Numbered from the stretch's first letter, positions 9,314-36,785 are shown. The stretch: DNA of 64,000 nucleotides from Blastocystis sp. Blastoise (GCA_039096225.1 JBBPEB010000029.1:186001-250000), one strand, 5' to 3'. Notes: generated by a model from the letters alone, not told the origin. A program made the numbers and translations.

Positions 9314-11761
9314 TTAAATAAAAAGGTTAAACATAAATAATTTTTCTTCATTACTAAAAATATCTTCATTATTTTTATACTTAATGATTTTTGTTTTTGT
9401 ATCATTCAATATAATTTCTGATACATATAAGTAATCAGGGATTGTATCAATGCTCTTAACTGTTGATTTACAGAATTCATTTAAAAAGCTATTAAATTCA
9501 TCATCATCAGAAATTGTTAATACATCCTCTGTGCCTTTAATTATAGATACGTATGTATTCATTTTATTTTTATTTGTTGATAAATAAGTAAGGAAATTAT
9601 TCTATAATCATAAATAAAAACAAAAAAATAATTATAAACAAAAATAAACTATTATATATATTATACTATTATATAATTCTTTTGTGGTTGACCATCTAAT
9701 ATTGGCAAATCCCTTAGACCAAGTTGATCATTACAGAAACGATTGATTTTTTGAAAAAGCGATATAGGTAATGTTGGATCCCCTAAAGTGTAATATATAT
9801 ATATATATATATATATATTATTATTATTATTATATATTATTATTATTATTATATATTATTATCATTAGTATTATTATTAGTATTATTATTAGTATTATTA
9901 TAGAAATTAACAGAAAGTGGAAAATAGAAACACTCATAAATATGATAAAGCATGAAAATACAACACAAACATAAATGCATTAATTTAAAAAAAATATATA
10001 TATAATAATAATAAAAAATTGTACAAATATAAAACACGTAAAATATAAAAGAATATAATTTACACATAAAAGTAGTAGAGGCATTGTTAGAAATACCCAA
10101 AAAATACCATAATTATTTTAACCTACCCAAAAAAAAAACGAATTGTTAGAAATACCCAAAAATATTCAAAATTTTTGTTAAAATACCCAAAAATTTTACA
10201 AAATTGTTAGAAATACCCAAAACTTTTTCAAGACTCTAAACGATTGGTACTTTGAAAACACAAATTTCTTAATAACCAATTAAAATTCTTTTTCTTTATT
10301 TTGTTAGAATTAGAAAAAAAACTCCAGAATATTTTTATATTTGATTTATTATATTTCACAAGTGAAGCTTATACTATGTAAGACATTAAAAAAATTTAAT
10401 AAATTCTCATAATAATGAAGAAAAATAACTATCTAAGTTAAAACCAGCATTTCATTTTACATATTTTATATAATTGCTAGAATTTTTAAACTAAATATAA
10501 TATAAATATTTCAGATACTTTTATCAATTGACTGGAGTCATTTATAATGTAATAATATATAGTACTGCTCTCAAATAAAGCATTTAGAAAACAACAATGC
10601 TAATTTTCCTGATTTTTTGGTGATTTTCCTCTATAAAAATAATATTTGCAGTTATAAATCACCAAAAAATACATTTATTTATTTTTCACTATATCTACAC
10701 GACTAAAAAGTTAATTACTACAAATTGTCGGCAACTATGTCTGTATATAGACGAAAAACACATTTTCATTATTATTTTTTAATAATTAGACAATTGATTC
10801 AAGTCAGCCACAAGAAGATGTGGAAAATCGTTTTTGTATGAATAAGGTTGATTACAGTGACTTCAAAAATAGTGAAGAAATTAAGAAATTTGAAAATGAA
10901 GAAACATATGGAGTACAAATTATGTACGAAAATAAGTCTAAACTCAAAAGTGATGTCTCAATTCAAATGCAAAAGCTAGGATATCCAATTAAGGTTCAAA
11001 AATCAGAAAAAGGAAGAATTATTTACAAATGTTGTGTTTCCGATTGCCCGTTTATGCTTCATTTCCAAGGTGACGACGTTTCTGGATGGATAATGAAAAG
11101 ATACTGTCATCATGACTCAACTGTATGTTATTTAATTAATTATTATAGTTTATACTTATTATTAATATAGAAATGCAATCGTTTTAATATGATTTACATT
11201 AAGCTTAACAAACAAAATAAAATAGATTATCAAATTATTAAGACAAGTAACTAAATATAAATATAATATATAATGTATATAATATTCTATTATATACAGT
11301 GATAAAAAATCGAATTAAAAATCATCAATTTAATATAAGGTATATATATATATCAATATATAAATTGTGAGAGAGAAATCTATACATTGAATAAAGAAGG
11401 AAAAAGAGGAAAATAAATATATAGAGAGAAAAAAATGAAATACAGTAGTATATGTATGTGAAAAGTGTTATATATTAATTCAATGTATGAGAGTAATAGA
11501 AGAAATATCCACCTATATATATAGAGAAAGGAAGATTATATAATATATACAGAGAGAAAGAAAGAAAGAAAAATTCTATTATATATATAGTAAGAATGAA
11601 AGAAAGAAACATTTATGAATATATAAAGAGAGAACGACAGATATATATATATAGAGAGAGAGAGAGAAAGAGAGAGAAAAAAATATATAATATATATATA
11701 TATATAGAGAGAGTAAGAGATGGAAGAGATAGAGAGAGATACATAGAAAGAAAAAAAGAAA

Positions 11762-11819
<58 letters not shown>

Positions 11820-14800
11820 TAAGTCTTAATCCAATGATTCTATCAAAAGATGCTAGTAATAGTAATGATCAAAATCATGAAGATGAAGCTGAGATACATG
11901 AAACTATCAATTTTACACACAATTCTCGGAGCTCAGATGCTAATTCTAATCCTACAAATACCCAAACTCTTCCTATCTTAGAAGATCCATTCATATCTAG
12001 TAAAAATTCTGAAATGGTCATAGAAGATATAAATAAATCAAAGGATAATAATCATGAAGATGAAGAAAGTAGAACAATTGATATAGAATTGAATATTGAA
12101 GATACATCAATAGATAATGTGTTTTCTTATGAAGAACAAAATGAAGGAATTACAGAAGATAGATTTAATAATATATTTAAAGATATTTCTGATAAATGTA
12201 TATTTATTCAATATAAGTCACATAAATACAATCAAGATATAAGCTCAAATGATGTTGTGAGTTATTTAAAGGAAAATAATCTAGCCAAGTATTTCAAATC
12301 AATATCTCAGTTAAAACAATTCCTGGAGAAGAAGAATATCAGTGTTTCATATGAAATAGCAAGAAACGCCTTAAGAGAATTAGGTATTAAGTCAACTAAT
12401 GACTATAGTAAAATACCATGTATTATAAAAAGTATAATAAGCAAAGAAAATTATGCTATATATGGTTGCCTCCCTCCAGGATATACATATAAGAATATTA
12501 ATGCTTATCCTTCTTCTTCTTATATTCAATCTAATATAGATGAGAATATAGTAGATAATCATTTAGAACAAGATGAAACTTTCAGAGTAAACTTGGAAGA
12601 TAGTGTTCTGAATTATTCTGAAAATGATTCAGTTTGTAGTGGAAATAATTCCAATATGAATATACATGAAGAAATAAACATGGATAGAGAATTAAACAAA
12701 GCAGTAGGGAATAATAAAGTAATAAGTCATGAGTTTCTATATTCTTTTGTATCTATTAAATCAAATATAGCATTATATAAGAAGGGAAATAAAGCAGTAA
12801 TCTTTATGGATGGAACTCATATGTATATGAATGATCATATCATATTAACTGCTATATCCATTACTATTAATAGACAAATACTTCTTCTTGCTTATGGTAT
12901 ATATGCTGTAGAGTGTTTAGCTACCTGGAGTGATTTCCAAACTAATCTGAAAAAAGCACTTGAACTCATGTCATGTAAAACTACAAACATAACATTTTTC
13001 TCAGATATGGACAAAGGTCTCAAAGGAAGCCTAGGAGTAGTCTTTCCTGAATGCACATATATATCATGTGCATTTCATATTCTAAAGAAGATGACAAATG
13101 TGAATTCAAGAATAATAGGACTAATATCACAACTCATTCTAATTGATGATGAAGAAGAATTCTATAAGCTTATTAATGATTCTTCAATAACAGAGAACCA
13201 GAAGAAGCAAATACTCTCACAAAGGGGAAAGAATATGTATAATATAGATCTACCACCTCATGTATCCAGATATGGATACATTGCCTCAAGTTTGGCCGAG
13301 TCATTTAATAATCTTATTAGTGACATAAGAGGAATGTCTATACAGAAGGTATTGTTTGAAATCTATAATCATGCAATTAATTATCAACTGAAAATAAAAG
13401 AGGCACCTCATATATCATTCTTTCTTCCTTACTTTCAAAAAGAGTTTGATATGGCTGATATATTTGTTTCTAATGTGATATCATATAAGAGTATAAATAA
13501 GGGTTTATATAGACTAGTAATGGAAGAAGAAAACCGTGAATACATAATTAATTTTGAACAGAATACATGTTCTTGTTCAATTTTTCAATACCAAGGTTAT
13601 CCTTGTATACATGCTATTCTTCTATATAAAAAGTATAATAGCAGTGTTTCGTATAATCAACAAGGAATTGACGATTTCAATACTATTGCCAAATACTTCA
13701 TTCCATATAAGAACCATATGAATACTTATTATAATTATTATGTAGATAGGTAATGATATATATAATACATATTATATAAATATTTTTTTTTGTTATATAT
13801 AGAAGAATAGATGATTCATGCTTGAAAGAAGAAAGTCACATAAATATTACAGGACCAAATAATCCAATTCGTAAATCAGGTCGACCATCTAAGTTTAACT
13901 ATTCTCATATAACATCTTATTATCTGAAAAATAAGTATTGGAAAATAAAGAACAGTATTCCAGCTTTGGAGTGTTTGAATGAGTGTGCAGTTGAAGCTGA
14001 AAAAGAGAAATATGAAGAAACTGATATTGCCTCAATTCCTACACTTGAAGATGTAGAATCATCAGAATATAGTTCGAAGAGAAGAAAGTAGTATTTTTTA
14101 AATGATAAGTCTATGTATATACTTATTATAATCTATAATACATATTAATTTTTTTACATTCCTAATAATATAAAATATTTTTAATTAATCATATTTAATA
14201 TAAATGTCTTCTTATTTATAAGATCATTGTTTTGTTATTGATTCAAATATAATATCATATATGTCGTTGATATTGCAGATATTCATATTAAAGAGACTAA
14301 GACTAATAAAAAAGAATACTCATCAACGGATATAAATCCAAAATGAAACCAGCTAGAGTAATATGTATTACAAATTATTGCATATGCAAATAAATGAAAG
14401 AGGACAAGAATAAGAAGGAGAAGGAGAAGGACAAGGACAAGGACAAGGAGCAGAAGAAGAAGGATAGGATAAAGATAAGAAGAAGGATAAGGATAAGGAT
14501 AAGAAGAAGAAGTAGAAGGAGAAGGATAAAAAGGACAAAGATAAGGATAAGGATAGGAGAAAGAAATGACAAGAAGAACGATAAAAAAAGAGAATGGCAG
14601 AAATAAAAGAAAAAGAAGGAGAAGGAGAAGGAGAACAAGAAGGAAAATAAGAATAAACCAAGAATAAACATAATAAGGAAAACATCAATAGAAGGTAAGG
14701 ATAAGTAGAATGAGAATGATTAGAAGTAGAAGCATAAGAATAATAATACGAAGAAGACGGAGAAAGAGAAGCATATGTGGGAGTAGAAGAAAAAGCATGT

Positions 14801-16033
14801 GAATAAAAATGGAAAAAGAAGAAACTAAAAAGAGAATAGAAGGAGAGGATCAAAATATGAATAAGAAGGAGAAGGATAAGAAGGATAAGAATGACAAAGA
14901 GAAGGAGAATAAGAAAGAAAGAACGAGAAAGAGAAGAAGGAAAAAATAAACAGAAGAAGAAAGAGAAGGAGGAGAAGAATGAGAAGAAAAAGAATAGGAA
15001 GGAGAATGACAAAAAAAAACAAGAATGACAAGAATGGCAAAAGGAAAAAGGAGAAGAAGACAAATTATAGAAGGAGGAGAAGAAGAAAAATTATAGAAGA
15101 AGGAGAAGAAGAAAGATTAAGAAGAAGGAGAAGAAGGAAAAGGAGGAATCAAAAGAAGGAGAAGGAGGAAGGAGAAGAAGATGAAAAAATAAAATTATAA
15201 GAAGAAAAAGTAGAAGAAGAAAGAGAAAGAGAAGAACCACAAAGAAAAGGGGGAGAAGAAAGAAATTATAGAAGTAGAAGAAGGAAAAGAAAAGAGAAAA
15301 AGGAGAAAGAGAATAAGGACAAGAATAAGGTAAAAGTAAAAGTAAAAGAATCAATAGAAGAAAAAGTATGAGAAGAAGAATATTGAAAAGGAGATAGAGA
15401 AGTAGACGAATAAGTTGAGATAAAATGAGAAAGAAGAAGAAATAAAAGTATGGTAGTAGAAACAGAAGTAGAAATAGGTAGAAATAGATGGAAAAGGAAA
15501 ATGAGAATCAGTAGAAGAAGAAGAAGAAGAAGAAGAAAATGAGAAAGAGAAGAAGAAGAATGAGAAATAGAATATAGAAATGAAATAGAAGAAACAAGAA
15601 TGAAAGAAGTAGAAGAAGAAAAAATAATACTAATAATACGAATGTGAATGAGAATAAGAAGAAGAAATAGAAGAATAGCAATAATGGAATGAAAATGAAA
15701 AAAAAAAAGAAGAAGAAAGAGAAATAGAAAAAGAAGAACAAGAAGTAGTTGTAATAGAAATGGATGTAGAAGCATAAAAAAGTAGTAGAAGCAAAAGTAG
15801 GAGTAAGAGTTGAAGTTGGAGTACAAGCGAAGTAGAATAGAAATATAAGTAGAAATATAAGTAGAAGAATGAGAAGTAGTATTAGTAATAGTGTAGAAGT
15901 CGAAATGGAAGAAAAAAATAACAGTAAGTAGTAGTAGTAGAAATATGAGTAGAAGAACAAGTATAAATAGAAGAATAAAGGAAAGAAGGAAAGAAGCTGA
16001 AGTAGAAGAAGTATAAGGAAAAGAAGGTAAATA

Positions 16034-16066
<33 letters not shown>

Positions 16067-19000
16067 TAAGGAAAAGAAGGTAAATATAAGAATAATAATA
16101 ATAATAGTAAGGAGAAGTAGTAAAAAAGAAGAAACAGAAGAATAAGGAGGAAGAGGAAATGAGATGAATAAAGAAAAGTAAAAAGAAGTAAAATATTGAG
16201 AAATAGAACGAGAAGTAAAAGAATAATAAAAAACAAACTTTAATAAGTATGGATAGAAGAAAAAGAAAAAGAAAAATAATGAGAAATAGAATAAAGAGAT
16301 TGAAAATGATAAGAAAAAGGAAAGCATGAAAGATAATAGGAATGAGAATAAGAAGAATAAGTAGAAGTATAAGGAGGAGTATAAAGAAAATGGAGATAAG
16401 GAGTAGAAGCAGAAGGAGAAGCTAAGGTTGAAGAAAAATAGAAAGGATGATAATAAGAAAGATAAAAGAAATAGAAGGAAAACGAGAGTGTGAAGTAAAA
16501 TAAGAATAACAAAAATAAAAAGAAGCAGAAGGAAAACAAGAAGAACTAAATGAAAATGAGGAGAGGAAGAATTTGAAAAAGAAGAAATATAATAAGAAGA
16601 ATAAGAACAAGAAGAGGAATCACAAAAATAAAAAGAAAGATACTACAAATAAAAAGAATACTGAGGAAGACAAAATATAGAGTAAAAAATGATATAGAAG
16701 AAGCAGAAGATAGTGAATAAGGAGAAGAAGAAGATAAAGTAGAAGAAGAAGTAGATCGAGAAACAGAATAAAGGGAAATGAAAAGTAGAATGAAAATAAG
16801 TAAGAAAATAGGAATATATAAATAAGATGTAGAAGAAAAATTGAAGCAAAATGAGACGAATTTAGAATAAAACAGAATACGTTAAATTAGAAGAATATGA
16901 AGAATAAAAAATGAGAAGCATACAAGTAGAATAATGAGAAATAGACAAGCCTGTAGAAGAAAGGCAAAAAAAGAAGAATCTGGAAAAAACAAGAATAAGA
17001 ATAGAATAAGAATAAGAATAAGAATAAGAATGGAATAAAAACTGACTGAGAAAGTACTAGAAGTAGTAGAAGTAGTAGTAGTGTAAATAGACTTAGACTT
17101 AGACTTAGAAGCAGAAGGAGAAGCACAATTATGTATGTATAAATAGAAGAAACAAAGTATAAGTAAAATAGGAAAAAGAAAAGGCGAATAGATGAAGTAT
17201 AATTATAAATATAAATAGAAGAATGAGAAAGAGAATATGAATAAGAATAGATGAAGTATAATTATAAGTACAAATAGAAGAAGAAATAGAAGAAATAGAA
17301 GAAAAATATAATAGGAATAAGGAGTAGAATTAAAAGAGTCTAATATAAATAATAATAAAAAGAAGTTATACTAGTATAAGTAGATGTAAAATGATGAATA
17401 TAAGTTGATAAACAAGAAGTACTAGAAGTAGAAGAATAAGTAGAAGTAGAAGAAATCGAATTATAATAGAACTAAAATAAAAAGTAGACGAAAAAGAGTA
17501 GAAGTTCAAATTGAAGAATAAGAATTAATAGTAGTACGAGTACATGTAAAAGGAGAAGTGAACGTAGAAGGAGAAATAGTCATAAGTAGTGGTAGTAGAA
17601 GTAAAGAACAAGAAGAAGAAGAAGAAGGAAAACTAGAAAGTATAAGTAGAACTAGAAGTAGAAAAGAAAGTAGAAGTAGACGTGCATGTATAAATAAAAG
17701 TAAGAATAGAAGCACGAGTACAATGATAAGTAGAATTAGAATAAGAATAAATACTAGTAGAAAGAAATAGGAATAAGAATAATAACAAGTAGTAATAGAA
17801 CTAGTAGTAGTAGTAGAAATTGGAATAAGAATGAAAGTAAGTAATAATATAAGTACAAGTAAACAAAAAGTATAAGTACAAGTAGAAATAGAAGAATAAA
17901 GTAATGAATGAAAAAAAACTGAAGAAGACGAAGTATAAGGAATAGAATAAGAACAGAATAAAAAAGGAATGAAAATAATAATAATGATGTAAAAACGTGA
18001 AAAGAAGGAGAAGAATAAAGAAAAGGAAGAGAGACTATATAATTAGAAAGAGAATGAGAAGTAAAATAAGAAGAACAAGAACTAATATAAATAGAACGAT
18101 AATAAGAAATAGAAGGAGAAGGAGAATATCAAAAAGAGAGTGAGAATGAGAAGAAAAAGGAAAATATGAAAGATAATAGGAATAAGAATAAAAAGGATAA
18201 GTAGAAGTACAACGAAGAGAAAGGAAAATGAAGAGAAGAAGTAGAAGCAAAAGGAGATGATGATGTTGAAGAAAAACATGTTGGAGAATAATAATAAACC
18301 ACATAAGGAGAAACAAAAGGAAAAGAAGAATTTGATGTAAAATAATAAGTATATGAAAAAAGGAGAAGCAGAAGGAAAATGAGTAGACTTAAACTGAGAA
18401 TACATGACAGAGAATTTGAAAAAGAAGAAATAGGATGAGAATAGTAGGAAAAAGAGAGGAATGAGAATAAGAAATAGAATGACGATACAAATAAGAAGAA
18501 GAAAAAGAAAATATAGAGAAAAAAGATGATATAAAAGAATGAGAAGATAGGGAATAAGAAGAAGATAAAAAGTAGAAGAAGAAGAAGAAGAAGAAGAACC
18601 AAAGCTAGAACTAGAACAAAGAGAAGGAAAAGTAGAAGTTTAAAAAAGAAAGATAATAGGAGAAAAAGTAAGAATTAGAATAAGATATAGAAGGATAGTG
18701 AGAAGAATTTGGTGAAAATAGAATACGCAAAAGTAGAAGAATATATATAAATAAAAAGTGAGAAGTATACCAGCAGAGTAAGGAGAACTAGACAAGAAAG
18801 TAGATACAAGTAAAAGAAGAATTTGGAGAACAATAAGAATAAGAATATGACTAAGAGAGTAGTAGTAGAACCATAAGAGAAGTATGAATAGATGTAAAAG
18901 TATAAATGAAGTAGAAGGAGAACAATAAGTATGAGTAGAACCATATGTATAAGTATAATGAGAATAAGAATAAAATAAGAAAGATGACAATATGAAGTGT

Positions 19001-22000
19001 TAGTAGAAGGAAAATGAGATAAATAGTAGAATAAAAAGAAGAATATTAAGGAGAGAAAGTTTAGAAGTGGAAGGAGTACAATAAAAATAAGAATGAAGTG
19101 AATAAGAATAGGAATAAGAAGAATAAAAAGGAGAAATGAAAATAGAAGGAGAAGAAAGAAGATATAAAGGAGAATAATAATAAGTAGAAGGAGAAATAAA
19201 AAATAAGTTTAATAAGAATGAAAATAAGAATAATAGAATAAATTGAAGATAGAAAAGTATAAGAAAAGAAGGAAGAAGAAGGAAAGTGATAAGATGAAGA
19301 ATTAGAATAAATAATAAGAAAATGAAGAATACGAATAAGGAGTATGATAAGCAGAAGTGAATAAAAAGAATGAGAAATGGAAGGACAATACTAATAATAA
19401 TAATAAGAAAAAGAAGATACAAAAGGAGGAGGAGAAGAATGAAAAAAAGTTAAGGCTAACTAGAAGCAGAATAGTATAAAGATAATGATAATAAGATTGT
19501 AGAACAAGAAATAGAAGTAGAATAAGAAGAGAAATGATTAGGAAGTATAAGTAAAGTAAGAAGAGAAAGATATCATGAATAAGAAGAGAAAGATATCATG
19601 AATAAGAAGAGAAAGATATCATGAATAAGAATAAGAATAAAAAATGAAGTAGAAATACAAGCAGAAATAGAAGTAGAATAAGAGTGTAAAAATAAGGTGA
19701 ATAAGAATAAAATGTGGAAGATGAAGAAGTAGTAAAAGTTGAGTGAATAGTAAAGAGAAATGGAAAGTAGACACTAAGGCTTATGAAATGAAAACAAAGG
19801 AATAACACCAGAAATAAGAAGTAGAATTAGAATAAGAAGGAAATTAAGAATGAAATGCTGAAGTAGAAGAAGAATTAACAGGAGACAAGAATAAGTAGAA
19901 GGCGAAGCAGAACGAGAATAAGCGTAAAAATAATAATAATTAAAGAATAATATCAATTAAAAGAAGGAAAATAGGAATGAGAAGTAAAATAGAAATTACA
20001 ATAAAAAAAATAAGTAAAAGTAACTAGATAAGCAGAATGAAAATATGAATAGTATGATGAAGGGAAAGGAGAATGAGAAAGTCGCATATGAAGGAAAGCG
20101 AGAAGTAGCACGAGGATAGTAATAAAAATAAGAAAGAGAAATTAAAAAATAAGGAGACGTGGAATAAGAAGGAGAAAGTGAGATATATGGAAAAACTAAA
20201 TAAGAAACAAAATATTAAGTAAAATAAGAAGTAAAAAAAGAAGTAAAAAAAGAAGTAACAACAATATATGAAAAAGAAGAAGTTGAAGAAGTTGAAGAAG
20301 GAGAAGAAAAATAAGAATAAGAGAAATATATCTAAGAATAATAAAAAGAAGATGACAATAACAAGGAGAAGTAAATTTACAAGGAGAAAAAAAAAGAAAG
20401 GAAACATAAGTGAAGAAGGAGAATAAGGAGAAGTAGAATAAGATGTACAGGTGAAGAAGAATAAGTAGTAGACGTAAAGTAAGAAGAATAAGAATAAGAA
20501 TGAAAGGATAAGAAGAAGGATAAGAAGAAGAAGAAGAAGAATGAAAAGGAAAGGATAATTAGAAGTATAATAATAAAATATAATAGTAGAATTCGTGAAG
20601 AGGTAATAGTTATGAAAACAAATAAAGAAAAATTAATATCTATACAAAAAAGAAGAAAAAGATGTAGTAAGAAGTGTATTAGAATGAAGAATGAAGAATG
20701 AAGAATGAAGAATGAAGAATGAAGAATGAAGAATGAAATTTTGTAAACCAAAAAATTTAATAAATAAAAGAATAATAAATTGCAACTTTCCTAATAGACT
20801 AATAATATTTGTAATCAATTTTTTGTTTTATAGAAGAAACAATAAAAATACCACTAGGTCTAAAGAATATATAATATTATAAAAATAGAATATTAATAAT
20901 TATAATATAAAGAAAAAAATAACATATATATTATTAATAGTCAGTTAAAACAAACTAACTATATTATTAAATACATATATACCTTAATAAAGACTTGAAT
21001 CATCGCAATCTGATTCCCAAGTTGTGCTTAAATACGCTAAGATTCTATAAATAAATACGTAGAATAAATTAATAAAATTAATTAAAGTATAAACATATTA
21101 GAAAAACAACAAGATAGAAAAATAGGAGCTAATTCAATTATAAAAAGTATAATATAAAATTAAAAAAAGATAGGGATGCTATTAGAATGATAGTGATGTA
21201 TTAATAGCATAGACAAGAAATAGATATAGCAAAAAATAAACAAAATGAGAAAAATGAAAAATATCTATATACCTTAGATTCATCAGTATTGTTTACCAAG
21301 ACCTTTTGAATTGATCTGAAACCAGATGAAGTTTGTTTTGAGCATATAAACAAGAAATAACCCATTGATCAACTGATTACTATATAAAATTAAATATTTG
21401 AAGAGAGTAAACTATATAATATATATATTTATAACTAGAAAACATACATAGATTCATTTTATATGCTTATAATGAAAATATATGAAATAAATCAATATTT
21501 GATTTTCAAGAAATAACCATTCTGAGGATGGAAACAGAGGAAAAACAGCCTAAATAGCGGAATTAATCTCTTCTATAGAAACTTTTTTGGGTTTCAGTGA
21601 ACAAGTTTTAAAAATAATTTCTAGAGATTCAAAGTATGGTATAAAAAGTCTTCTTTGATATGGTCCCTATTCTTGGAGTCTTTCAGAATCACTTAAATCT
21701 TTGGAAAACCGTATTCAGCTACGGCTTAAATGAACTCCTAAAAAAGAATATTTTTTAAATATTATTATATGGATTATTTGCTTATTTAGAAGGTTATTTT
21801 ATTATTTATATTTATATTATATTTTATTAGGTAGATTATTATAGATTAGGCTTGAAATGAATCCAGATAATAAACCAATTAGTGATTCATTCTTTCACGT
21901 ATATACTTATTTGATTTACCATTATTTATATAGGTTTAGAAACATGATTTAGAGAGCCCGGTGGAGTTGGCTACAATATTGGAAGAAAACGCAATGATCG

Positions 22001-23179
22001 GAATTTCCTCTTTAAGAATATTCTTTGGTGTATGTTCTAGTGGTATATTATTTTGTTTTTTGTTTGTATATTTAATTATTTATTTAGGAAATTCAAAAGA
22101 AAAAAGTAATTGGTCTCCATCTACTAAGAAAATTGATGTCTAGGTCCTTCTTTTGATTTTTATTATTTTATTTTTTTATCAGAAGTATATATTTATGTTA
22201 TTAATGCTATATTGTATCTAATTATATAGAAATGGCAAGTGATTATTGTTTTGGAATTTTTGTAACTTTTCGATTTCAGCACAATTATCGAGTCCTTAAA
22301 AGTATATAAATATATTAAATAATTATTTTTTTCTATAGATATATGGAGTAAATTGATATGGTTATATATACAAAAAAAAATACTAGAAGAATATGGCTAA
22401 AAAGTATATATTTTTTTATTTTTATATTATTAAAATTATATATATTTGTTTAATTAAATTTGTATATTGTAGTTATTTATTTTTGTTATAACTGAGGCTC
22501 TAACATTGATATATGGTTCAAATATATATATATATATTTTTATTATTTATAAATTCTTAATATTTTATTAATTTATTATATTATTTTTCTATATAGGACT
22601 ATTAATTATCATTCTTTTATTATAGTTTATATATATATATATGTATTATTTATTTTCGATATATTTTATTCTTATTCATATATATAGTATTATTAAGCTA
22701 TGTACTCATTAGCTTCTCTACATCAATACTATTATGTGACTAGGTATATTATATATATATTTAATTATTAGCATATTATTTTCTATTACTTCTTAATATA
22801 TATATATATATATTTATATATTAACTAGTATTTTTATATAGAGAATGTGACGTTTCCCTTATGTTATAAACTTCATGGTCATCAATTTTTATATCTAAGG
22901 TATATAGTTTTTATATGTAAGTAATTGTTTTATTGTAGTATATTGTTTCACATTATTTTTATATATTATTCTATTTTCCGTACAATAATTTTTTATTTTT
23001 TTTATATAATTTATATTATGTACCTATAATTACTAATAATATCCTATTGTTTATATTTCTGTTATTCATGTCTCTATAGTTTTATTAGTTATATAAAAAT
23101 ATAACTAGTAAAACTGTAATTACATATATATATTATATAGGTGTTATATAAATATACGAATGTTGCTTTAGTTGAAGAA

Positions 23180-23262
<83 letters not shown>

Positions 23263-24148
23263 GTTATAGACTTTTATTGTATTCTTTTTATATTATTATT
23301 TTATACATTTTTCTCTCTATATAACATATTCACAGATATATTTACCAAATATATACTCTTTAGAAAATTGATATATGTTTTATTTTGGAAGTTGATAATA
23401 TATACTAGAATCAGTTCATATCAATTGTTTATTCTTAAACTTTATATATATATATATATATTATTTATCAAAGTCAAAGTTATATATAAATAGAATAATG
23501 AAGAATTATCTATATATAGTGGTCTTTAGTTCTATTACTACATTATTTTTATGTATTTAAGGTATATATAAATATATTATATATATACTTTTATATATAC
23601 TTATTATATAAATATAAACTTATAGACTTATATATAGTAATATATCAGTTATCCTTTTATTTTTCTCATGAGTTTTTAAGTATATAGTCTTTTTATCTTA
23701 TTATATATATAATACATTTTTTATAATTGACACAAAAGGTAATATTATTTGTATATATAATTTTATCTCAACTATTCTTCTATTTTATTCTTTTATATCA
23801 CTTTTTCTTTCTATAACTATATTATGTATTATCATTTTATAATATAATTTGTTTATAGTTAATTATGTATATATATGTAGTAACAGTAATAACTCTTCTT
23901 TTTATCTCTTTTGTTCAATTATACTAGTATATTTTCTATGATAATATATATACTTTGTATTTATCTCCTTTTATATATATTATCTATTTATTTTGATACT
24001 AATTATATATACACTTAGTGTTATGTATACTACATTTTCTTTTTGTTTATAATACTATACTAATATCATTTTTATTATATATAGGATTAAGGATATATAT
24101 AATTGTTTTGAATGATTTACTTTTGTATTATGTTAAACCTTATTTTCT

Positions 24149-24189
<41 letters not shown>

Positions 24190-24908
24190 TTTTCTTTATA
24201 TTTTCCAGCTTTCTTTTCTATTATATACATTTATACTCACTATAGTGTACTATTATTAATATATATAGTTTGTGAAGATATTAAATAGATTCTACGTAAA
24301 GAGTATGTATTTTAATTGTTTTAATACATATACATAATATGTTCCTATGTTATATTTAAATATATATATTTTTTACTTTATATATATATTTTTCTCATAA
24401 TTACATATATGTATATATTCATATATATATATATATAGACTTGGTATTCCCTTAATTAATTCATGCCGTCTTATTCATTCATTTTATATATATAGTCTAT
24501 AATCAGCTTTTATGAATTATTACAAATAATGTATACAATCCTTTTGTATGTATTTTATTTATATTTATATAGCTTGCTATGTAGTATTTTCTATTATAAC
24601 AATATAATGTGTTTATTTTATTTATATATATATTAATTTTTTTTTTAATCTATATATAGAACGTATCTTTAGCTTATCTTCTATGTTCGTATACAACTTA
24701 ATATAGATAGTATATATTGTATATATTTATTATATATATTGTTTGCTAATATTCTATTTTTAACTTTATTCTTAATTACATTATATTCTATTGTATATTG
24801 AAATAATCTTTTTATTCTACATGTTTTTATTATTTAGGTTAGTATTAATAGGTGTAATAGAGTATATATATATATAATTACAATATTTTTATAGTCTCTT
24901 TTCTTCAA

Positions 24909-24941
<33 letters not shown>

Positions 24942-26549
24942 TATTCATATAATTAATATTCCTTAGACTGAATATGGTCAGTAGCAATCATTAATAGATT
25001 GCTATCAGGTTCAATTCCTGATCTAAGGTTGTATACTATATTTTTTATAAAAAAATTTAAATGTTTTTTCCCTATAGGTATTCTCATTCATTAGAACCAA
25101 TATGAATAAATACATTGAGTTTCATGCAATTGAATCAACTCTATACGTCGTTAGTCGCTCTTTTATAATAATTTTAGATACCTTTACTTAAAACCAAACA
25201 CATTCACAATTACAATCACCCAAAATTATCTAGTCATTATTTTGTTGAGTTATGTATCCTATTCATCAATTTTACACACAAATAAAAAATAAATATTCAT
25301 CAATAATATCTTGAAGTCTATAAACACGCAATACATTATTTGTTTATACTCTTAAAAGGCATTTCTACTGTTTATATTAATATGATTGACACTAAGAATC
25401 ATTTCTAACCAACTTTAAAAACTTTTGAAGAACCTTAACAAATTTACATTACCTAAAAAACTATTATAATCAACTTTGGCTTATACGAGTCATGATTAAA
25501 TTTAAATTATTAATAGAAATTCATAATAAAGGCATTCTATCTCAACATATCACCAAGAGAAATCAATTATGTTTGTAACTTCCCTAAAATTAAATTAATT
25601 ACTAAAAGACGTATTTTAATTAATGTAGAATTCAAATTCAAACACACATAAACTCATCATTTCTGACAATTTTACACATTTAGACAATCTAGTGAGTATC
25701 ACATAATCAACTAATTCTTGTTGTCTTCATCAAGTCTAACGATTTCCTTATGACAAGAAGCATCAATTTTATTTTATTCAACACTCTATAAATAATTAAT
25801 CAATTAACTAATTTTATTTACTTAAATACATACTCCAATAACAACAACAAGACATCAGGAGTGAGAATAACTGATTAAACTATTTAAATAAAATAATTAA
25901 TAATAAAAAGTAGAAATATTAGGATTTTAATAATTTTTAATAAGTTAATTTATAGTGAAGTTTCAATAATCATATAAAAAATATGATTAATTTAGCTTTT
26001 GTATGTTCTAAGCATATATCTATCTATATATAGTCCCTAGGAGTATATTAGAGTACCTTCCAGTCTCCATTGGCAGATTGATCTAAACTGGTATGTTCTC
26101 TTTCTCTATTATGAGCTAATCTAGGTGATGTAAAGTGGTTGTACTAGATGGTCAGCTATTGTGTCGTGGTTATAAATGGGATGATGTGACGTCACCATAT
26201 AAAACTATTTCTTTAGGTTTTATCAATGAGTGGGAAATGCTTGGCTATGTTAACTGAGCGTTGCTTGAAACTTTCAAAAAATCAATTGGTCAAATGTCTA
26301 AACAGATTTGTCTTGAATCATACAGAATCATGATCTATTCACATAATCACTACATCTACAATTCAAATATTCATATTTGAAGTTACTTGGTTTAACTCAT
26401 ATTCTGATTCTAGATGTATATATTTTCTACATTTTTTTTATATAAATATAATTATATAATTATATTAATGTTTATATAGGTTGTTATATAGCTATTAAAT
26501 CTAGTTCTTGCTTTTCTTGTCACTAAATTCTTGGTTCTTCTCTTTTATG

Positions 26550-26580
<31 letters not shown>

Positions 26581-29522
26581 TATCTGTCAAACGCGTATTG
26601 TTTTTTTCTCAAACGCGTATTTTCTCAAGATTATTTTCTAAAATAAAAGAATAACTGTGATATTTTTTTCTTAGCTATATAACTTTTTATGTCAAGCTTC
26701 AGTGCTATTACACACAACATATGATTAAATATTTCATTAGTGCCTTATGAAGAAGAAAAATAAGAGTCAAATTGTATTCATTTCAAGGGTGTACTCTGTC
26801 AAACTTTGTTAGGTCATTCTGATTTCGTAAATACACATAGAGAATGAGTTCTGACATAATCTTGTCGACAAATAAGTCTTTGAAACTGTCTTCTAGGTCG
26901 TGATACTGAACTTCATATTCTTTGTTTGTTTTAATTTATTATGATTTACTTTCTACAGAGTACTTTAAATATATTGTAATGACTTAAAAGCTAAATATAT
27001 GAGATAAAATTTTGAATGGGTTGAAATCCCTATTATAAATAATCAGATTCTTCTCAAATTGATTTCAACTATTGTACTATGATTAAATGATTGAACTAAT
27101 TAATAAAATAAATAAAACAATAAATATATTTGTCATGTCATAATTCTATTTTTCAGGTTTCTGTCTTTTATTTCAGACAGTCATATTTTTATTTTTAGGT
27201 TGCATATGACGTGAATATTTTTCATAATAATTTTTGTAGATTATAAAATATTTTATAATTATTAGAATTGTAAATGATTAACTTCCAATATCATCAAACT
27301 AAAAATAATTATATTTTCTTGAGTACCAAATACTTTTGACTACAACAATAAGCAAAAAACATAAAAATTAGTTCTTCATAGTTTATTAACACTAAACAGA
27401 AAATTTGATTTATTATGGATTTGCAAGCGTCTAGTTTCACCAAATTGATTTATTTATAATTTTAATTTATAGTTATAAGATATATGTTATGTGAACTTTA
27501 ATATTATGTTAATAAATATCTTTTTAATATTTTCCTTATGGAGAAAAATAATCATTTTCAATTGACGTTAAAGTGTTTTTCTAAAAAAGGGTTGTTACAC
27601 TTAGTGATAGTTCTTGATAATTATTGAATTAAAAACAAAAAAAATATATTCTTATATATTTAACACTCTCTTATATAAATATTCAAATGATATTTTAAAA
27701 AACAAATAATTCTTACTGGTATAAAGAAAGCTGCTAAAAGAAAGAAAAAGCCAAAAAAAAAATGATTTTTTTCTGTTATTAATTAATGTCAGGTTACCTA
27801 TCTCTTCATGTAGATTGGGAACAGTTTATATATATTAAATTAGTACAATGTTAAGTATCTCTATTTAGTAAAATATAGATTTATATATAAATATTTTAAT
27901 ATTTATTAACACAAAAGAAATTATATGTATATGGCTTTTTGAGTTTTTTACACTTTTTTCTTTTTTCCCATATTGAAAAATAGAAATTCAAAAGTATGTG
28001 CAGTTTCAAACTGTTTATATGCTTGCTATTACATTATGATAGTGAAAATTCTAGAATCAATACATTATGATACAACACAATGAAATGCATTTTTTTCATA
28101 CTTTTTGACAATAAAGTAATATAAATTATAAATAAATTTCAGAATTTTAAATTATTTAAAAATGATAGATATTCGACTATAGTTGCAAAAAATATAATAA
28201 AGAGAAATAAACACATAAAGAAAACATATATATATTTGACATAATATACATTTTTTAAAAACTCGTTTTAGGGTATTGTTATCATGCCCTTGAATCAATA
28301 AATATTTCATTAATTGTTTTCAAGGTTTATATATATAATATAGATTGATAGATGCATAATATACCAAAATTTCAATACTCTGTGACTTATTATTAACCGT
28401 CAAAATATCATAGTTAGTTAGTGTTTTTATGAAAAACAATAAAAAATGTAAAAAAAAATAAAATCCTCTTTTTGAAACACTAAATTTAATTTCAAATATT
28501 TTAATATAAATAATATAAATAAGCACGGCTTATATTTTATACATATATAAAAATAGAAACTAGTTAATCATTCTATGAACTTCAGTAATCAGGAATATTC
28601 ATGGAGTAAAGGAATGAGTGTGAAATTTTTTGTTGTCTTTTTCATTATTCTTAATTTTTATTATATGTTTATACATAGATATTATTTTATAAATAACTTG
28701 ACATATTATTTCTTTAACTAATTTATTTTATGAGTAGGATTGTTAACTCAATATATAAAACTATAAAAAACAGTTGTTAATTGTGTGTCTAAAGGTAGTG
28801 TATTTCTTAATGTTAAGTGATTATTTTATCATTTATATTAGTCTTGATTTAGGGTTGATTATAATATCCAACAAATAATGATTTTTAATGATAATAATAT
28901 GAGAATTAGCACTAAATTATTGATAAGATATTACTAATTTTTAAGATAGATACGTTAACAATAATTGCAGACGATATAGACCTCATTTATGTTGTAATAG
29001 ACTAATTTTGAAAGAACATTATTCAAGTGATACTTGCTCAAACTCATTTGAGTGAAAATTATTTGTATATTCTTGAAGATAAACATATTCTTATATATTT
29101 TTTAGATTAACTCTTTTTAATAAGTCGCTCTTGTCATTAAAAAAGTTGGTACTATAAAATAAGACGAGCAACTTTGTGTACTGATTTTTCATTGTGTATT
29201 ATGTGTATACACTTCATATTTATGAAGTAGTCTCTGATAGATTAGAAAAGAGTTTATGCAAAAAATTATTTAAAAAAAATAAATATCAACTGAGTTCAAC
29301 CAAAAACAAAATATACACAAAAACATAAAAATACGCGTTTGAGAAAAAAACGATACGCGTTTGACAGATATTATTAACTTCTTATGTTTTGATTTTATAA
29401 TATAAATTTCTTAATTTTTGAAAATTATTTCTATTTATACATATTATTAGTTTCTTCTATGTACTTATTTGAAGTTTTTATTAATATTAATTTATGCACT
29501 TTTTTCTTTTTTTTAATTATAT

Positions 29523-29559
<37 letters not shown>

Positions 29560-31678
29560 CTATTTCTATATATATTTGGTTTTCTTTTTGTCTATATTTG
29601 CCTTCTTTTCCATTTTATTCTTATTAATTTCTTTGTTATACTTTATATTTTTCTTATAGTCATCGTGTTGATTCGGGTAATTGTTACTACTATTAATACT
29701 ACTCAATATCACATTTCATTATATAATATACCTTTTTTCTTTAGTTCTTACTTATCATTCTCCTTACATTCTTCTTATCTTTCCTTTTTGTGTTCTCCTT
29801 CTATAATTACATCTTCTCTTCATTTCCACCTCTATATCTTAATCTTCTTGTTCTTCTTCATTTTCTTCTTATGTCATTACTTCCTTTTCATATCTTTCCA
29901 CTTCTACTTTTCTATTCGCTATTCCTTTTAATTCTTCATCTAGACGTTCTTTCTATATTCCTTTTTCTTTTATATATCCTTATTCCCCTTCTCCTTTTCT
30001 GTCTCCAATATTCTTTTCCTACTCGTTCTTCTTCATCTATTTATCCTTATGCTTCTATATCTTGTATATACCATTCTTTTGCTTCTCAATCTCAATCTCC
30101 TTCTCTCAATCTCTTCTGTATCTCTTCTTCTTCCTCTTCTTCTATATATCCTTATTCCCCTTCTATATCTTATATATATCTTTATTCTTCTTCTATATCT
30201 TATATATATCCTTCATCTTCTATATATCCTTCGTCTTTATATTCTTTTTCTCTCTATATATCCTTCGTATATATATTCTTTTTCTCTCTATATATCCTTC
30301 CTCTGCATTCCTTCTTCTATTTGCCATTATTCTTCTTATACATTTTATCTATATCATTCTCCTCCTATGTTTTCTATTTTTTCTATATATCCTTATTCTT
30401 ATCTTTCCTCTTCTATATATCGTTTTTCTTCTATATATCTTATTTTTGCTTCTTCTTCTATATATCTTTCTTCTTCTTCTATTTATTGTTCTTATTCTTC
30501 TGTATCCTCTATTTATCATTATTTTCCATAGTATTCTTCTACTGTATCTTCTTCTTGTCTCTTTCTTCTTCTTAAATATCTCCTTCTTCTCCTTCTTTTC
30601 TTCTATATCTTCAATATACCTTTCTTTATCTATATATTTTGATGTTCATTATTTCTCTATATATCTTTATTCTCCATATTCTTCCGTATCTTCTTCTTCT
30701 TTTTATGCTTCTCTTTATTCTCCTTCTATATATCTTTCTTTTCCTTCTTTTCCTTCTCAGTCTCCTTCTCTTCATTTTATCATTCTCTTTCTCTCTATCT
30801 CTATCTCTTTCTATTTCTATATCTTCTATATGTACTTTTTCTTCTTCTTCTTCTATATATCATTATTTTCCTCCTCCTCCTACTCTTCCTTCTTCTTTTA
30901 TCATCATTCTTCTACTTCTTCTATCATTTCCTTCTTCGATTTCGATATCTCTATATATCATTTTTCTCCTTCGTCTTCTCCTTCTTTACTCTTTATATTA
31001 TTCTAATTTTATTCCTTTTCATCTATTTCCTCTTTATCTCAATATTCTCTCGATTTATTACACATAATATCAATTATATATATATATATATATAATCTTT
31101 TATACTCTTTTTCTTTCATCATATACTATCTTTTTTTCCTACATTTACACTTGTACTTCCTATGTGTACTCTACTTATATTTTTATTTCCTTCTTAATTT
31201 ATTCTCCCTTGTTCTTCTTCTAACTCTCTTCTCTATCTGTTTTCTCTTCTTCTCCTATACATGACTTTTTATTATCCATCTATCTTTCTTTTCTTCTTAC
31301 CTTCTTATCTTATTTTTTACTCGCTTCCTATTCTTATTCTTCTTCTTTATATATATGCTTTTTATTCTCTATCCTATTAACTAACTCCTCCTTCTTCTTC
31401 TTCTCATTTACTTAATATTTTTCTTTTTCCTAATTTATTTTCCTATATTCTTCATATTCATGTTTTCATTTTTTTATATTCAATTCCTATCTTTTATCAT
31501 CTTATATCTATATATATACTTCTCTCCATATTTAAACTATTTCTATCTACTATACTAATTAATATAGTATTTATTTTTATTAATAAAAAGATTTTATCCT
31601 TTTTATTTCTTATTTATACTTATTATTTTATATGTTTCTTGTTTATATATTTAATTTATATATTAAAATAATTTTTTC

Positions 31679-31722
<44 letters not shown>

Positions 31723-33607
31723 GCAACAGTAATATGTATTCTATTTGATAAATATATATGAAAGAGATAAGTATATATTTATATATCTATATTATTGATT
31801 CATCTTTTTTAGATATATATATTAAATATTGTATTTTATTATTATTTATTATTACTCTTATGCTCTATAAGGTGAGAGGCTATCATAATTCGATAACAAT
31901 CAGGTTCAACTCCTGACATAAGTCATTCTATATATATATATATATATTTTTTTATTTAATAAACGTTTTAATTATATGTTCTTTTTACACTTATTAATGT
32001 ATTTATTAAATTATTTATAGCTCTTCATCCTTCAAAACTTCATAGTTTCTGAAATGAGTTGTAATCTGTTTTATTCTCAAAAGTGTAGCTTATTCAAAAT
32101 ATGTTTGAATTGAGTTAAATACAGTTTTAAAACTTAGATTCATTTTTTATTTTCAAAATATACTCAAATACAGAGTATATTCAGCAATCATTAATACTTT
32201 AACGACTGTAGTTTATTATTTTTAACTGAATTCTGGTCAGTATACTCAATACAAACAACTAAGTACAATACATACGTATTCATGATTTTTAAACAACATT
32301 TTCCATTTCGACATTTACTTGATCCATTATAAAACTATTTGTCCTTTTGATATAGTAAAGAAAAACGAATACCATATACCAAACAAAACGTTTTAACTTG
32401 AATCTCGTCATCTATTAAATATTTTTCTTAATCAATTCACAGTTCATACTCTTAAAACAGTTATTTAAGATTAATATTTATGTATTTGTCCTTATACAAT
32501 ATTTTCATGACACTGTAATAATATATATGAAAATTAAAAGAGTCAAGAAATCTGTTAATTATCAAAAAATAAGTTCTATTTACTAAAATCATATTTATAA
32601 GATTTATAAACTTATACCATATAAAAACATAGCTCTTATATAAAGTATTGGCTGAATTAGTTTATTTGTAAGTAAATTAAAAGTATGTTATATAACGTAA
32701 TTTTAGGTTACTCTTTTTAATCAGATTTATTTCATAGCTATTTATGGTTTATTTGTCTGTTAATCTTATTTTTTAAAACAATTACAGACAATTATATTAT
32801 GATCCTTGTCTATTAAGTTATTTTATTGAATTAATAGTATAAATAAAAGTTATATAACAAAATAAATGTATATATTGATTAAAATAAGGAATGAATATAA
32901 ATAAATAAAAATAGATAAAATTGCCAAAAAGCAAATTCTTAGAATTATATAGTACAATAGACGAACTTCTAATAGAAACTTAAAAATCGATTGATTGGAT
33001 CAAATAGTCAAATCCTAACGTCATAATATGAATTATTCTTTTCATTTTTTATTAATTTAAATTCTTGAAATACATCTAATAAACACGGTTATTATATAAA
33101 TTAATACGATTGGACAACGAAATCAAAATGTTAACAGAAATTTTTGGGTATTTCTAACAAATCATACAAAAAATTGGGTATGTATACAAATCAATAGGGA
33201 AATCTGGGTATTTCTAACATTTTTCCAAAGTAGTATGTATTAAAATAAAATACATGTATATTCTTGCTTTTTATGTAGATTAGAAATAACATCGATAATT
33301 CTTTTCATCTCATTCAGAACCGATTCACTTGTCAGACCAATTTGTTGCTCAAGTATTCTTCTATCATAGATATTATTATTGTCTAAACGGCTTGAGTATT
33401 TTTGATATCGTCTCTGATACTTCTAGGTATAATAAAATAGATTTTAACAAAATATACGTTTATCTTTTTGAATATATTCCTATTACTGCTTTTATCTAGT
33501 TTCTGCTTCGATGCTTTTGCTGATGTAATTTTGTTCAACACTGTATTTTTGCTTAAAATTAATTCATCTGATGATGAAGAAGAGGATGATGAATCAATAT
33601 CGCTCAT
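9314..33607 (-). CDS. CACTA accessory gene (~240 aa, TnpA-like position, function unknown) with the MULE inserted in intron 2
   Basis: Phase-compatible GT-AG exons 33607-33458, 33422-33254, 9782-9667 and 9601-9314 join into one open frame (MSDIDSS..KKIN|KYQRR..KQEYT-W-DPTLPISLFQK..NYII|NNFLTY..MNTYVS..). Divergent from the CACTA transposase. The 3' end may extend through further exons. Confidence 0.7.
10078..10222 (+). repeat. MULE left TIR: five copies of a TGTTAGAAATACCCA-type motif at ~30-bp spacing
   Basis: TACCCAA cores at 10094, 10124, 10153, 10184 and 10214. Confidence 0.9.
10737..14091 (+). CDS. MULE/MuDRA-type DDE transposase, 6 exons, apparently intact
   Basis: N-terminal MuDR/WRKY-like domain (KSEKGRIIYKC..CPF..WIMKRYCHH..C). 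Catalytic motifs FMDGTH, FFSDMDKGL, CAFH, AESFN. SWIM finger CSC..GYPCIH and SGRPSK tail. All five GT-AG introns splice in phase. Confidence 0.93.
14390..20740. repeat. 6.3 kb purine-rich (A/G on +, U/C-rich on -) low-complexity tract
   Basis: AGA/GAA/TAG/TAA micro-units with very little C on the + strand. Internal duplications near 16008/16061, 16326/18167, 17186/17246 and 19560-19630. Ends in (GAATGAA)n. Confidence 0.92.
20983..21379 (-). ncRNA. Putative spliced non-coding exons reading leftward into the U/C-rich tract
   Basis: GC-richer blocks 21379-21273 and 21044-20983 are bounded by TATAG acceptors and AAG|GTATA donors on the minus strand. All three frames contain stops. Confidence 0.35.
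21850..24960 (+). ncRNA. Putative multi-exon long non-coding transcript (unit 1), upstream of tRNA-like element 1
   Basis: More than 10 short exon-like blocks with host-style TAG acceptors and GT donors (e.g. 21850-21898, 21934-22042, 22088-22143). No continuous reading frame found. Confidence 0.4.
23183..23259. repeat. (TA)n microsatellite
   Basis: About 38 TA units. Confidence 0.95.
24961..25028 (+). ncRNA. Non-canonical tRNA-like cloverleaf 1 (68 nt)
   Basis: CCTTAGA|CTGA-ATATGG-TCAG|TAGCAATC-ATTAATA-GATTGCTA|TCAGG-TTCAATT-CCTGA|TCTAAGG. Four fully paired stems (7/4/8/5 bp), D-loop GG, TTCAA T-loop (B-box-like), no linker nucleotides. Confidence 0.8.
26578..29373. mobile_element. Non-autonomous TIR element (~2.8 kb) nested in the MULE; superfamily unresolved
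   Basis: ~46-bp TIR TAATATCTGTCAAACGCGTATYGTTTTTTTCTCAAACGCGTATTTT at both ends with one mismatch. The palindromic target (TA or ATAT) makes the TSD ambiguous. No intact ORF. Confidence 0.85.
29740..31450. repeat. 1.7 kb pyrimidine-rich (C/T on +) low-complexity tract
   Basis: TCT/CTT/TAT micro-units, compositionally the reverse complement of the 14.4-20.7 kb tract. Confidence 0.88.
31857..31922 (+). ncRNA. Non-canonical tRNA-like cloverleaf 2, homologue of element 1
   Basis: CTTATG|CTCT-ATAAGGTG-AGAG|GCTATC-ATAATTC-GATAAC|AA|TCAGG-TTCAACT-CCTGA|CATAAG. T-stem is identical to element 1, with compensatory changes in the other three stems. Confidence 0.75.
33140..33226 (-). repeat. MULE right TIR: three inverted motif copies at 30-bp spacing
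   Basis: TGGGTA cores at 33145, 33175 and 33205; TGGGTATTTCTAACA occurs twice. Confidence 0.9.
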
Positions 33608-36700: not shown

Positions 36701-36785
36701 AGTTGTTGATGATGCTGTTTATGTATATATATATTATGAATACTTAATTTTTATATATTTCCAAAATTTTTATTCTCTTTACTAA
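33783..36785 (+). CDS. CACTA/EnSpm transposase (TnpD-like, Transposase_21/DUF4218-type), multi-exon; may continue in small exons to ~37450
   Basis: In-phase exons from ATG 33783. Motifs CQKC..CLCG, YPLCYRI, MSVDG (D), CCDFPE (D), FCRYC, PLDWMHLYGN, QLHSLLHIP, LGS..SYER (E). Confidence 0.9.

Follow-up and report, generated by a model that had tools for sequence, protein, structure and literature searches.

A recently active 20-kb Mutator-like element with a largely non-coding cargo in Blastocystis sp. Blastoise

Mutator-like elements (MULEs) are normally a few kilobases long; loss of internal sequence is the expected fate of a DNA transposon, and derivatives that lack a transposase are as a rule short. 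Members of the superfamily make target-site duplications of 8-11 bp and have terminal repeats of 14-500 bp (PMC6446971), and complete MULEs of arthropods reportedly span 1.4-10 kb, mostly 2.5-5 kb (PMC13359780). Here we describe a MULE at positions 10078-33226 of a 64,000-nucleotide stretch, hereafter the window, which is C19:186001-250000 in the 33.3-Mb, 34-contig assembly of the tortoise-associated Blastocystis sp. Blastoise. Although the superfamily is known, the literature that we searched held no description of an autonomous MULE of 20 kb of which four fifths appears to be non-coding. Nor did we find there a description of non-autonomous relatives of 15-24 kb that keep their cargo, or of a cargo shared across transposase lineages.

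The window element resembles autonomous MULEs such as MuDR, Jittery, TED and Muta1: its DDE transposase has the MULE and SWIM domains, it makes a 9-bp duplication, sub-motifs recur within its long imperfect terminal repeats, and it shares its ends with non-autonomous relatives. Unlike these MULEs, it measures 20.4 kb, of which about 16 kb is without coding signal, its non-autonomous relatives are 15.6-23.8 kb long and keep the whole cargo, and its transposase is remote from others. Pack-MULEs are non-autonomous MULEs with captured host gene fragments. The window element shares with them a large internal segment that is not transposase. However, no host gene fragment was detected in the tested frames of the cargo, the element is autonomous while its relatives of 15.6-23.8 kb lack the transposase, and the cargo is equal across subfamilies and does not vary from element to element.

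Rehavkus elements are MULE relatives that have a minisatellite before the 3' terminal repeat and make a 9-bp duplication (PMC6446971, Table 1). The window element is like them in its 9-bp duplication and in having internal repetitive non-coding DNA near one end. Rehavkus, however, has a PHD finger and is known from insects and annelids, whereas the window element has a SWIM finger, and its tracts are kilobase-scale degenerate purine or pyrimidine low complexity instead of a minisatellite. In maize, divergent Mutator clades exchange parts by recombination (PMC10401008). Discordant histories are seen here as well, since cargos 67-86% identical go with transposases 39% identical and with different end motifs. 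In maize the terminal repeats and transposase are swapped, whereas here a non-coding module of about 12-16 kb is swapped or retained.

The genomes of tortoise isolates of Blastocystis measure 26-33.3 Mb and have a GC content of 21-23%; transposable elements make up 5.6-7.5% of them and low-complexity DNA about 12%, and the genome paper makes no mention of Mutator elements (PMC12129017). The elements described here total at least 0.3 Mb of the 33-Mb genome, as summed from our genome searches, and they may be under-counted in the published estimate of transposable elements (PMC12129017).

Structure and copies of the autonomous element

The segment 10078-33226 is one copy of an autonomous, very recently active MULE of 20.36 kb, which moves as one piece. 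An identical open frame of 639 amino acids (100%) was found at seven loci on seven contigs. The other copies are more than 99.8% identical to the window copy from base 10078 to base 33226 wherever the sequence was in hand, and genome searches with end-to-end matches at this identity found the whole cargo in all seven. Five copies with both ends in hand have their own 9-bp duplications: AAAGTAGTA, ATTATTATT, TTTATATTA, TAAAAATTA and a fifth that lies in a TA repeat, so that four of the five are informative. Because the seven copies are near-identical and the duplications differ from site to site, the 20.36 kb is a single mobile unit. Contiguity of this unit rests on the seven concordant copies and not on reads. 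Sequence was available for 12 loci; for most of the diverged copies described below, the architecture follows from coordinates and percent identities.

Copies differ by 0-2 substitutions per about 15 kb, save for one cluster of 8 substitutions within 94 bp (11671-11764), which lies in the intron that precedes the main exon of the transposase. This cluster splits the copies into two haplotypes, one on contigs C19, C23 and C31 and the other on C8, C13, C14 and C20, and looks like a gene-conversion patch or the trace of two source elements.

The ends, the transposase gene and a later insert of the window copy are as follows.

10069-10077, no strand: left 9-bp target-site duplication, AAAGTAGTA, identical to 33227-33235
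10078-10237, plus strand: left terminal region, with the 15-bp motif TGTTAGAAATACCCA three times (10085, 10144, 10205) plus half-motifs, at a phasing of about 60 bp
10790-14091, plus strand: transposase gene, with exons 10790-11245, 11287-11352, 11813-13633 and 13801-14091, mapped from the annotated protein of 853 amino acids
26584-29367, no strand: nested element with terminal inverted repeats, 2,784 bp, ends CTGTCAAACGCGTAT..., in this copy only, with an empty site in the C8 copy
33067-33226, minus strand: right terminal region, holding the 15-bp motif twice in inverted orientation (33145, 33205), again about 60 bp apart
33227-33235, no strand: right 9-bp target-site duplication, matching the left copy

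The original prediction for this locus proposed a MULE with a perfect 9-bp duplication, terminal inverted repeats built as motif arrays, an intact transposase and a length of about 20 kb once a nested insert of 2.8 kb is set aside, and all of this held. AAAGTAGTA flanks the element on both sides. With up to three mismatches the 15-bp motif matches eight times in the window, a number reached in none of 100 shuffles. The two ends align with each other over about 100 bp through the shared motifs at +8 and +67, and their outermost 7 bases are unlike. Both termini recur in all seven copies and in at least 10 non-autonomous elements, and no internal copy of the motif lies within the element. Two features of MULEs are present here: terminal inverted repeats, and a target-site duplication within 8-11 bp, which is 9 bp in all five copies with both ends in hand. 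A scan of metagenomes for two phased end motifs gave zero matches. The end motif shows no change, although the sequence around it has drifted to 75%, and this behaviour fits a putative binding site of the transposase.

The transposase, whose N-terminal exon encodes a zinc finger and which further has the MULE DDE domain and a SWIM finger, is 100% identical to the NCBI protein WA158_002995. The MULE domain (PF10551) scores 41.3 bits against a Pfam cut-off of 27.6, and the SWIM zinc finger past the catalytic domain 33.3 bits against 19.6. In MULEs a SWIM finger after the catalytic domain is common, not universal. In an alignment with 11 relatives, D484, D549 and E647 (numbering of the 853-amino-acid protein), the CxxH motif and the SWIM residues are invariant. 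PF03108, a MuDR-type DNA-binding domain of WRKY/GCM1-like kind, reaches 14-17 bits where the cut-off is 25, and exon 1 has a Cys/His pattern. Among 1.84 billion representative proteins, 3 are related at E <= 1e-30, and the 150 best matches are mostly 20-30% identical. Outside the genome of Blastocystis sp. Blastoise, the relatives of this transposase thus appear to be only remote. The transposase probably acts by cut-and-paste, most likely by binding the arrays of the 15-bp motif at both ends; every insertion yields a 9-bp duplication.

The nested insert is missing from the other six copies and does not belong to the family cargo. Its own duplication can be read as either ATAT or ATA. The insert has terminal repeats of about 45 bp that are nearly perfect, with CAAACGCGTAT twice in each, and zero open frames of 80 amino acids or more. 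The possibility named along with the original prediction, that other copies are short and the cargo is a set of later insertions, is not borne out, because all seven copies carry the entire cargo; only the 2.8-kb insert is later.

The cargo and its distribution among relatives

Downstream of the transposase gene lies a cargo of about 16 kb, about four fifths (80%) of the element, without protein coding where tested. Its modules follow in the order purine tract, block A, T-rich spacer, tRNA mimic, block B, pyrimidine tract and tRNA mimic.

14390-20740, plus strand: purine-strand tract, 6.35 kb (A 57%, G 24%, C 3.5%), degenerate low complexity of GAA/AAG/AGG type
20833-22343, no strand: conserved non-coding block A, 76-86% identical in more than 15 diverged elements
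22344-24960, no strand: T-rich spacer with AT microsatellite
24961-25028, plus strand: tRNA mimic 1, a 68-nt cloverleaf that is the minimum-free-energy fold (z = -5.0), 95.5 bits to the nine-member model R1
25029-26583, no strand: conserved non-coding block B, 76-86% in diverged elements
29640-31420, plus strand: pyrimidine-strand tract, 1.8 kb (T 55%, C 25%, G 3%), the compositional mirror of the purine tract
31856-31923, plus strand: tRNA mimic 2, called tRNA-Ile(AAT) by ARAGORN, with a weak cloverleaf fold (z = -1.2)
31924-33066, no strand: right subterminal non-coding region, 85-91% in non-autonomous elements with the same ends

This is the layout that had been read from the window, in which a block is followed by a stretch rich in T or in C and T and this by a cloverleaf, the series occurring two times on the plus strand. 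The accompanying claim that the cargo is non-coding agrees with a frame scan, with frameshifts among the copies and with a Pfam scan. Outside the skewed tracts, no stop-to-stop frame of 80 amino acids or more was found except a 105-amino-acid reading of the (TA)n run. In block A, three of the seven near-identical copies have frameshifts in the two longest open frames. In diverged copies with about 80% DNA identity, one of these frames has stops and both are 49-63% identical in amino acids, which is the neutral expectation at that DNA identity. No family passed its cut-off in a Pfam scan of the tested cargo frames.

The purine tract has a period-3 signal and is a mosaic of short local tandem duplications. 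It was rejected as coding on the ground of about 700 stops over the plus-strand frames; its long minus-strand frames are runs of Phe, Leu and Ser that result from composition. The pyrimidine tract was considered as an inverted copy of the purine tract and this was also rejected, the similarity being only about 65% and of low-complexity kind. In a diverged element on contig C31 (L042), the pyrimidine tract is found at the same position.

GC-richer blocks within 26041-26420, which had been taken for exon-like, are 80-85% identical to a diverged copy against 88-94% for their surroundings, and are the least conserved segments in that comparison. P0006, a predicted protein of 204 amino acids that starts with the exon-1 zinc finger, was followed as a lead to splicing into the cargo. 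Its tail matches an unrelated multi-copy gene and has no match in the cargo, and its locus in the Blastocystis sp. Blastoise genome has stops; because of these two facts P0006 says nothing on cargo splicing. A decayed copy of the multi-copy gene to which P0006 fuses the zinc-finger exon is found at C28:177229-181838, where a solitary left-end fragment of the MULE (84% to 10320-11291 of the window) lies beside it.

A genome search with the end motif found at least 10 further elements of 15.6-23.8 kb that have three motifs on one side and two inverted motifs on the other.

Non-autonomous elements with the same ends, first five: C4:1557645-1573314; C8:566117-583522; C16:928556-952327; C16:1306514-about 1322117; C21:1090455-1108929
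Non-autonomous elements with the same ends, second five: C22:23477-46364; C24:896723-914752; C26:1202853-1219034; C28:192235-214816; C28:365734-381761

Compared with the window copy, these ten elements are 75-76% identical from the first base to 11319, collinear at 67-73% in the purine tract, 76-86% in blocks A and B, and 85-91% in the last 1.8 kb, in all but one of them to the final base. The genome search found no transposase in them, and their remnant of exon 1 has stops in most. No pair of ends closer than 15.6 kb was found in that search, that is, no short derivative.

A second lineage has the same cargo. On contig C10, a transposase 39% identical to that of the window element lies upstream of this series, from the purine tract through block A, the first mimic, block B and the pyrimidine tract to the second mimic, with 67-86% identity. 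L042 is a transposase-less relative of this lineage and aligns with the window from 24974 to about 32322, where the homology of the second lineage ends. Its end motif, GACATATTTATCA, present in two copies 60 bp apart, is unlike that of the window element. The collinearity of the cargo in the same-end elements and in the C10 lineage shows that the cargo is an ancestral module that has been retained, not a set of recent accidents. Because the cargos are far more alike than the transposases and the ends, the module has probably been exchanged between transposase lineages by recombination. A family of giant DNA transposons, as the original prediction had it, is well founded: it has seven copies that are autonomous and at least 10 that are not, and the cargo also occurs with the transposase of a second lineage. 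At L042:5450-5900 (C31, about 594150-594600), just past the end of the element, there is an open frame that by eye is like the N-terminal part of a Helitron.

The tRNA mimics

The 3' ends of MALAT1 and NEAT1 have tRNA-like elements, mascRNA and menRNA, which are cut by RNase P and RNase Z. The cargo is similar in that a non-decoding, tRNA-shaped element lies downstream of long non-coding sequence on the same strand, and in that the acceptor and T arms are kept while the anticodon loop is free to vary. In contrast to the vertebrate elements, the mimic is a transposon-borne repeat with at least 150 copies; it is known here from sequence alone, and no sequence kinship is claimed.

In the mimics the D stem adjoins the acceptor stem without a linker, and the variable region is about 1 nt long. 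Mimic 2 and about 100 nt upstream of it are about 70% similar to mimic 1, and by eye a (TA)n run lies upstream of mimic 1. Among nine aligned members the T arm, which is B-box-like, is invariant, and the anticodon loops vary (TAA, TTA, AAT, and one member with a 5-nt loop). In this alignment, a small sample of related sequences, 93.4% of the cells are paired and 9 pairs are changed on both sides; none of 500 shuffles was paired as highly, and slid controls were paired to about 40%. Because pairing has been kept through compensatory changes, the mimic appears to be a non-decoding, tRNA-shaped element under structural selection that is carried by many repeats. Such a fold, selected without decoding ability, is a property that the mimic shares with mascRNA-type elements. 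The mimic is also the best-conserved segment in comparison with a diverged copy (94.5%), and it is the only part of the cargo with demonstrated constraint.

The original prediction spoke of tRNA-like cloverleaves. The likeness holds for the shape only. At E <= 1 the Rfam tRNA model RF00005 (gathering score 29 bits) had no hit in 9500-34000, whereas the genuine tRNAs of this genome score 60-75 bits. An Rfam search of the same interval found no family. The absence of an RF00005 hit, the non-canonical geometry and the varying anticodon loops rule out that the cloverleaves are tRNA genes. A tRNA-derived short interspersed nuclear element, of which every copy would have retroposed independently and have a flanking duplication and a 3' tail of its own, does not fit the mimics within these elements either, since both are at fixed collinear positions: the spacing from mimic to mimic is 4,110 nt in the window copy (insert excluded) and 4,106 nt in L042. 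Because spacing and position are collinear across elements, the mimics have been inherited with the cargo.

The nine-member model has at least 150 hits above 81 bits in the genome, most of them outside these elements, so the cloverleaf is not a feature special to the MULE. On contig C4 (1506832-1542676) hits of the model are about 3.16 kb apart, and matches to the region of mimic 2 occur every about 4.25 kb near the ends of contigs C1, C6, C7 and C10. Because of this regular spacing, the mimic is also part of tandem or subtelomeric repeats. A weaker match of 44.8 bits was found at L009:3597-3663 (C28, about 345592-345658), about 600 bp upstream of, and opposite to, another MULE transposase, which is 43% identical and has a stop.

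Explanations for the cargo

What has to be explained is a very young, mobile Mutator family that is 80% protein-free and whose transposase-less relatives keep at least 15 kb of its cargo. We consider it rather probable that the element is a giant autonomous MULE, recently active, with an ancestral collinear non-coding module common to its relatives. Whether the element depends in any way on its cargo, be it in cis or as RNA, is a separate matter, and on the comparisons made here we find that prospect evenly balanced. If the cargo is needed in this way, it would be a new kind of transposon accessory function. Both mimics are on the strand of the transposase, and a read-through transcript would meet each in turn. 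The mimics may then make RNase P/Z, or RNA polymerase III (Pol III) with TFIIIC, cut or end such transcripts, and Pol III/TFIIIC would bind the invariant B-box-like arm; this role, the likeliest for the mimics, is a tentative suggestion and somewhat doubtful. The long non-coding RNA with spliced exon-like units and a tRNA-like 3' element, and its possible part in self-regulation or anti-silencing, as first predicted, would be speculative. Should the cargo be needed in cis or act as RNA, these elements would also offer a natural setting for the study of signals by which tRNA mimics are processed, beyond MALAT1/NEAT1 of vertebrates.

The main rival is a giant MULE with functionless, inherited ballast, in which low-complexity expansions and old repeat fragments, including a piece with the cloverleaf, have been passed on by descent and shuffled by recombination. 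In this genome of 22% GC, which is prone to low-complexity growth, large size would be costless for the transposase. We take this seriously, at a little short of an even chance. Several observations that favour it also weigh against our preferred reading. The mimic is borne by many other repeats, at least 150 times elsewhere, and its presence in the MULE could be that of a hitch-hiking fragment. Apart from the mimic, which is the sole pattern of constraint, the conservation of the blocks looks like uniform drift at about 86%, and the purine and pyrimidine tracts diverge faster than the blocks. Such even drift and faster divergence mean that the cargo could be inherited ballast. The purine tract is a mosaic of local tandem duplications, and low-complexity DNA amounts to roughly 12% in tortoise isolates (PMC12129017). 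Moreover, all non-autonomous elements have one breakpoint in common, at about 11319. Because it is shared, these elements may descend from a single deletion event, which would leave few independent derivatives to judge from and weakens the argument from the absence of short ones. A search of sequencing runs found one run with 18% of the sampled words, and this run is only guessed to be RNA.

Against ballast, however, the cargo is collinear in at least 17 elements with the same ends and in the lineage with the 39%-identical transposase, and short derivatives were not seen in the end-motif search. The strand asymmetry of purines and pyrimidines persists despite sequence drift, and the mimic has compensatory changes. 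If the cargo is ballast, it would follow that elements of more than 20 kb are within the efficient reach of a MULE transposase, which is of practical interest for transposon vectors with large cargo.

A bolder extension is that the persistent selfish unit is the non-coding module of about 12-16 kb rather than the transposase, that is, a device acting in cis or at the RNA level that is passed between lineages. On the evidence of the shared cargo this is conceivable, and we think it unlikely. In such a device, transcription would be stalled or ended at the mirrored purine and pyrimidine tracts, R-loops being one way, and RNase P/Z or TFIIIC would be drawn in by the two mimics. Expression or tolerance of the element would depend on the device, and recombination would pass the module between unrelated Mutator lineages and, in pieces, to other transposon classes.

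It is very improbable that the cargo hides one or more protein genes of small exons, like mudrB or the accessory genes of VANDAL, that escaped the frame scan. Genes of this genome often have introns, at least three of which interrupt the transposase gene, and the GC-richer blocks had been taken for exons at first reading. These blocks, however, are less conserved than their flanks, the frames of the cargo gave no Pfam match past cut-off, and the longest ones of block A are frameshifted in three of seven copies; in diverged copies one of these has stops, and both have neutral amino-acid identity. In addition, the transposase-less elements retain the cargo, yet the only recognisable exon in them has decayed. 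That the 23-kb unit is an assembly artefact or a side-by-side composite of separate elements is scarcely credible, even in a repeat-rich, low-complexity region, because the structure recurs on seven contigs, where it begins and ends at the same bases while the 9-bp duplications around it differ, the end motif has no internal copies, and the one true later insertion is cleanly bounded with an empty site in other copies.

Around the element, an open frame of 557 amino acids at 5047-6720 (plus strand), on its left, has BTB/POZ and TLDc domains and is host-gene-like. On its right, 1.3 kb away, there is an open frame of 744 amino acids with a CACTA-type Transposase_21 domain (29.6 bits) at 34551-36785 (plus strand), together with 34123-34413 (plus strand), and the MULE may sit inside or beside a CACTA element. 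Elsewhere in the assembly, contigs C9 and C12 contain two short stretches rich in high-scoring tRNA genes, with equal scores in mirrored order; the genome of the mitochondrion-related organelle has probably been recorded twice in them.

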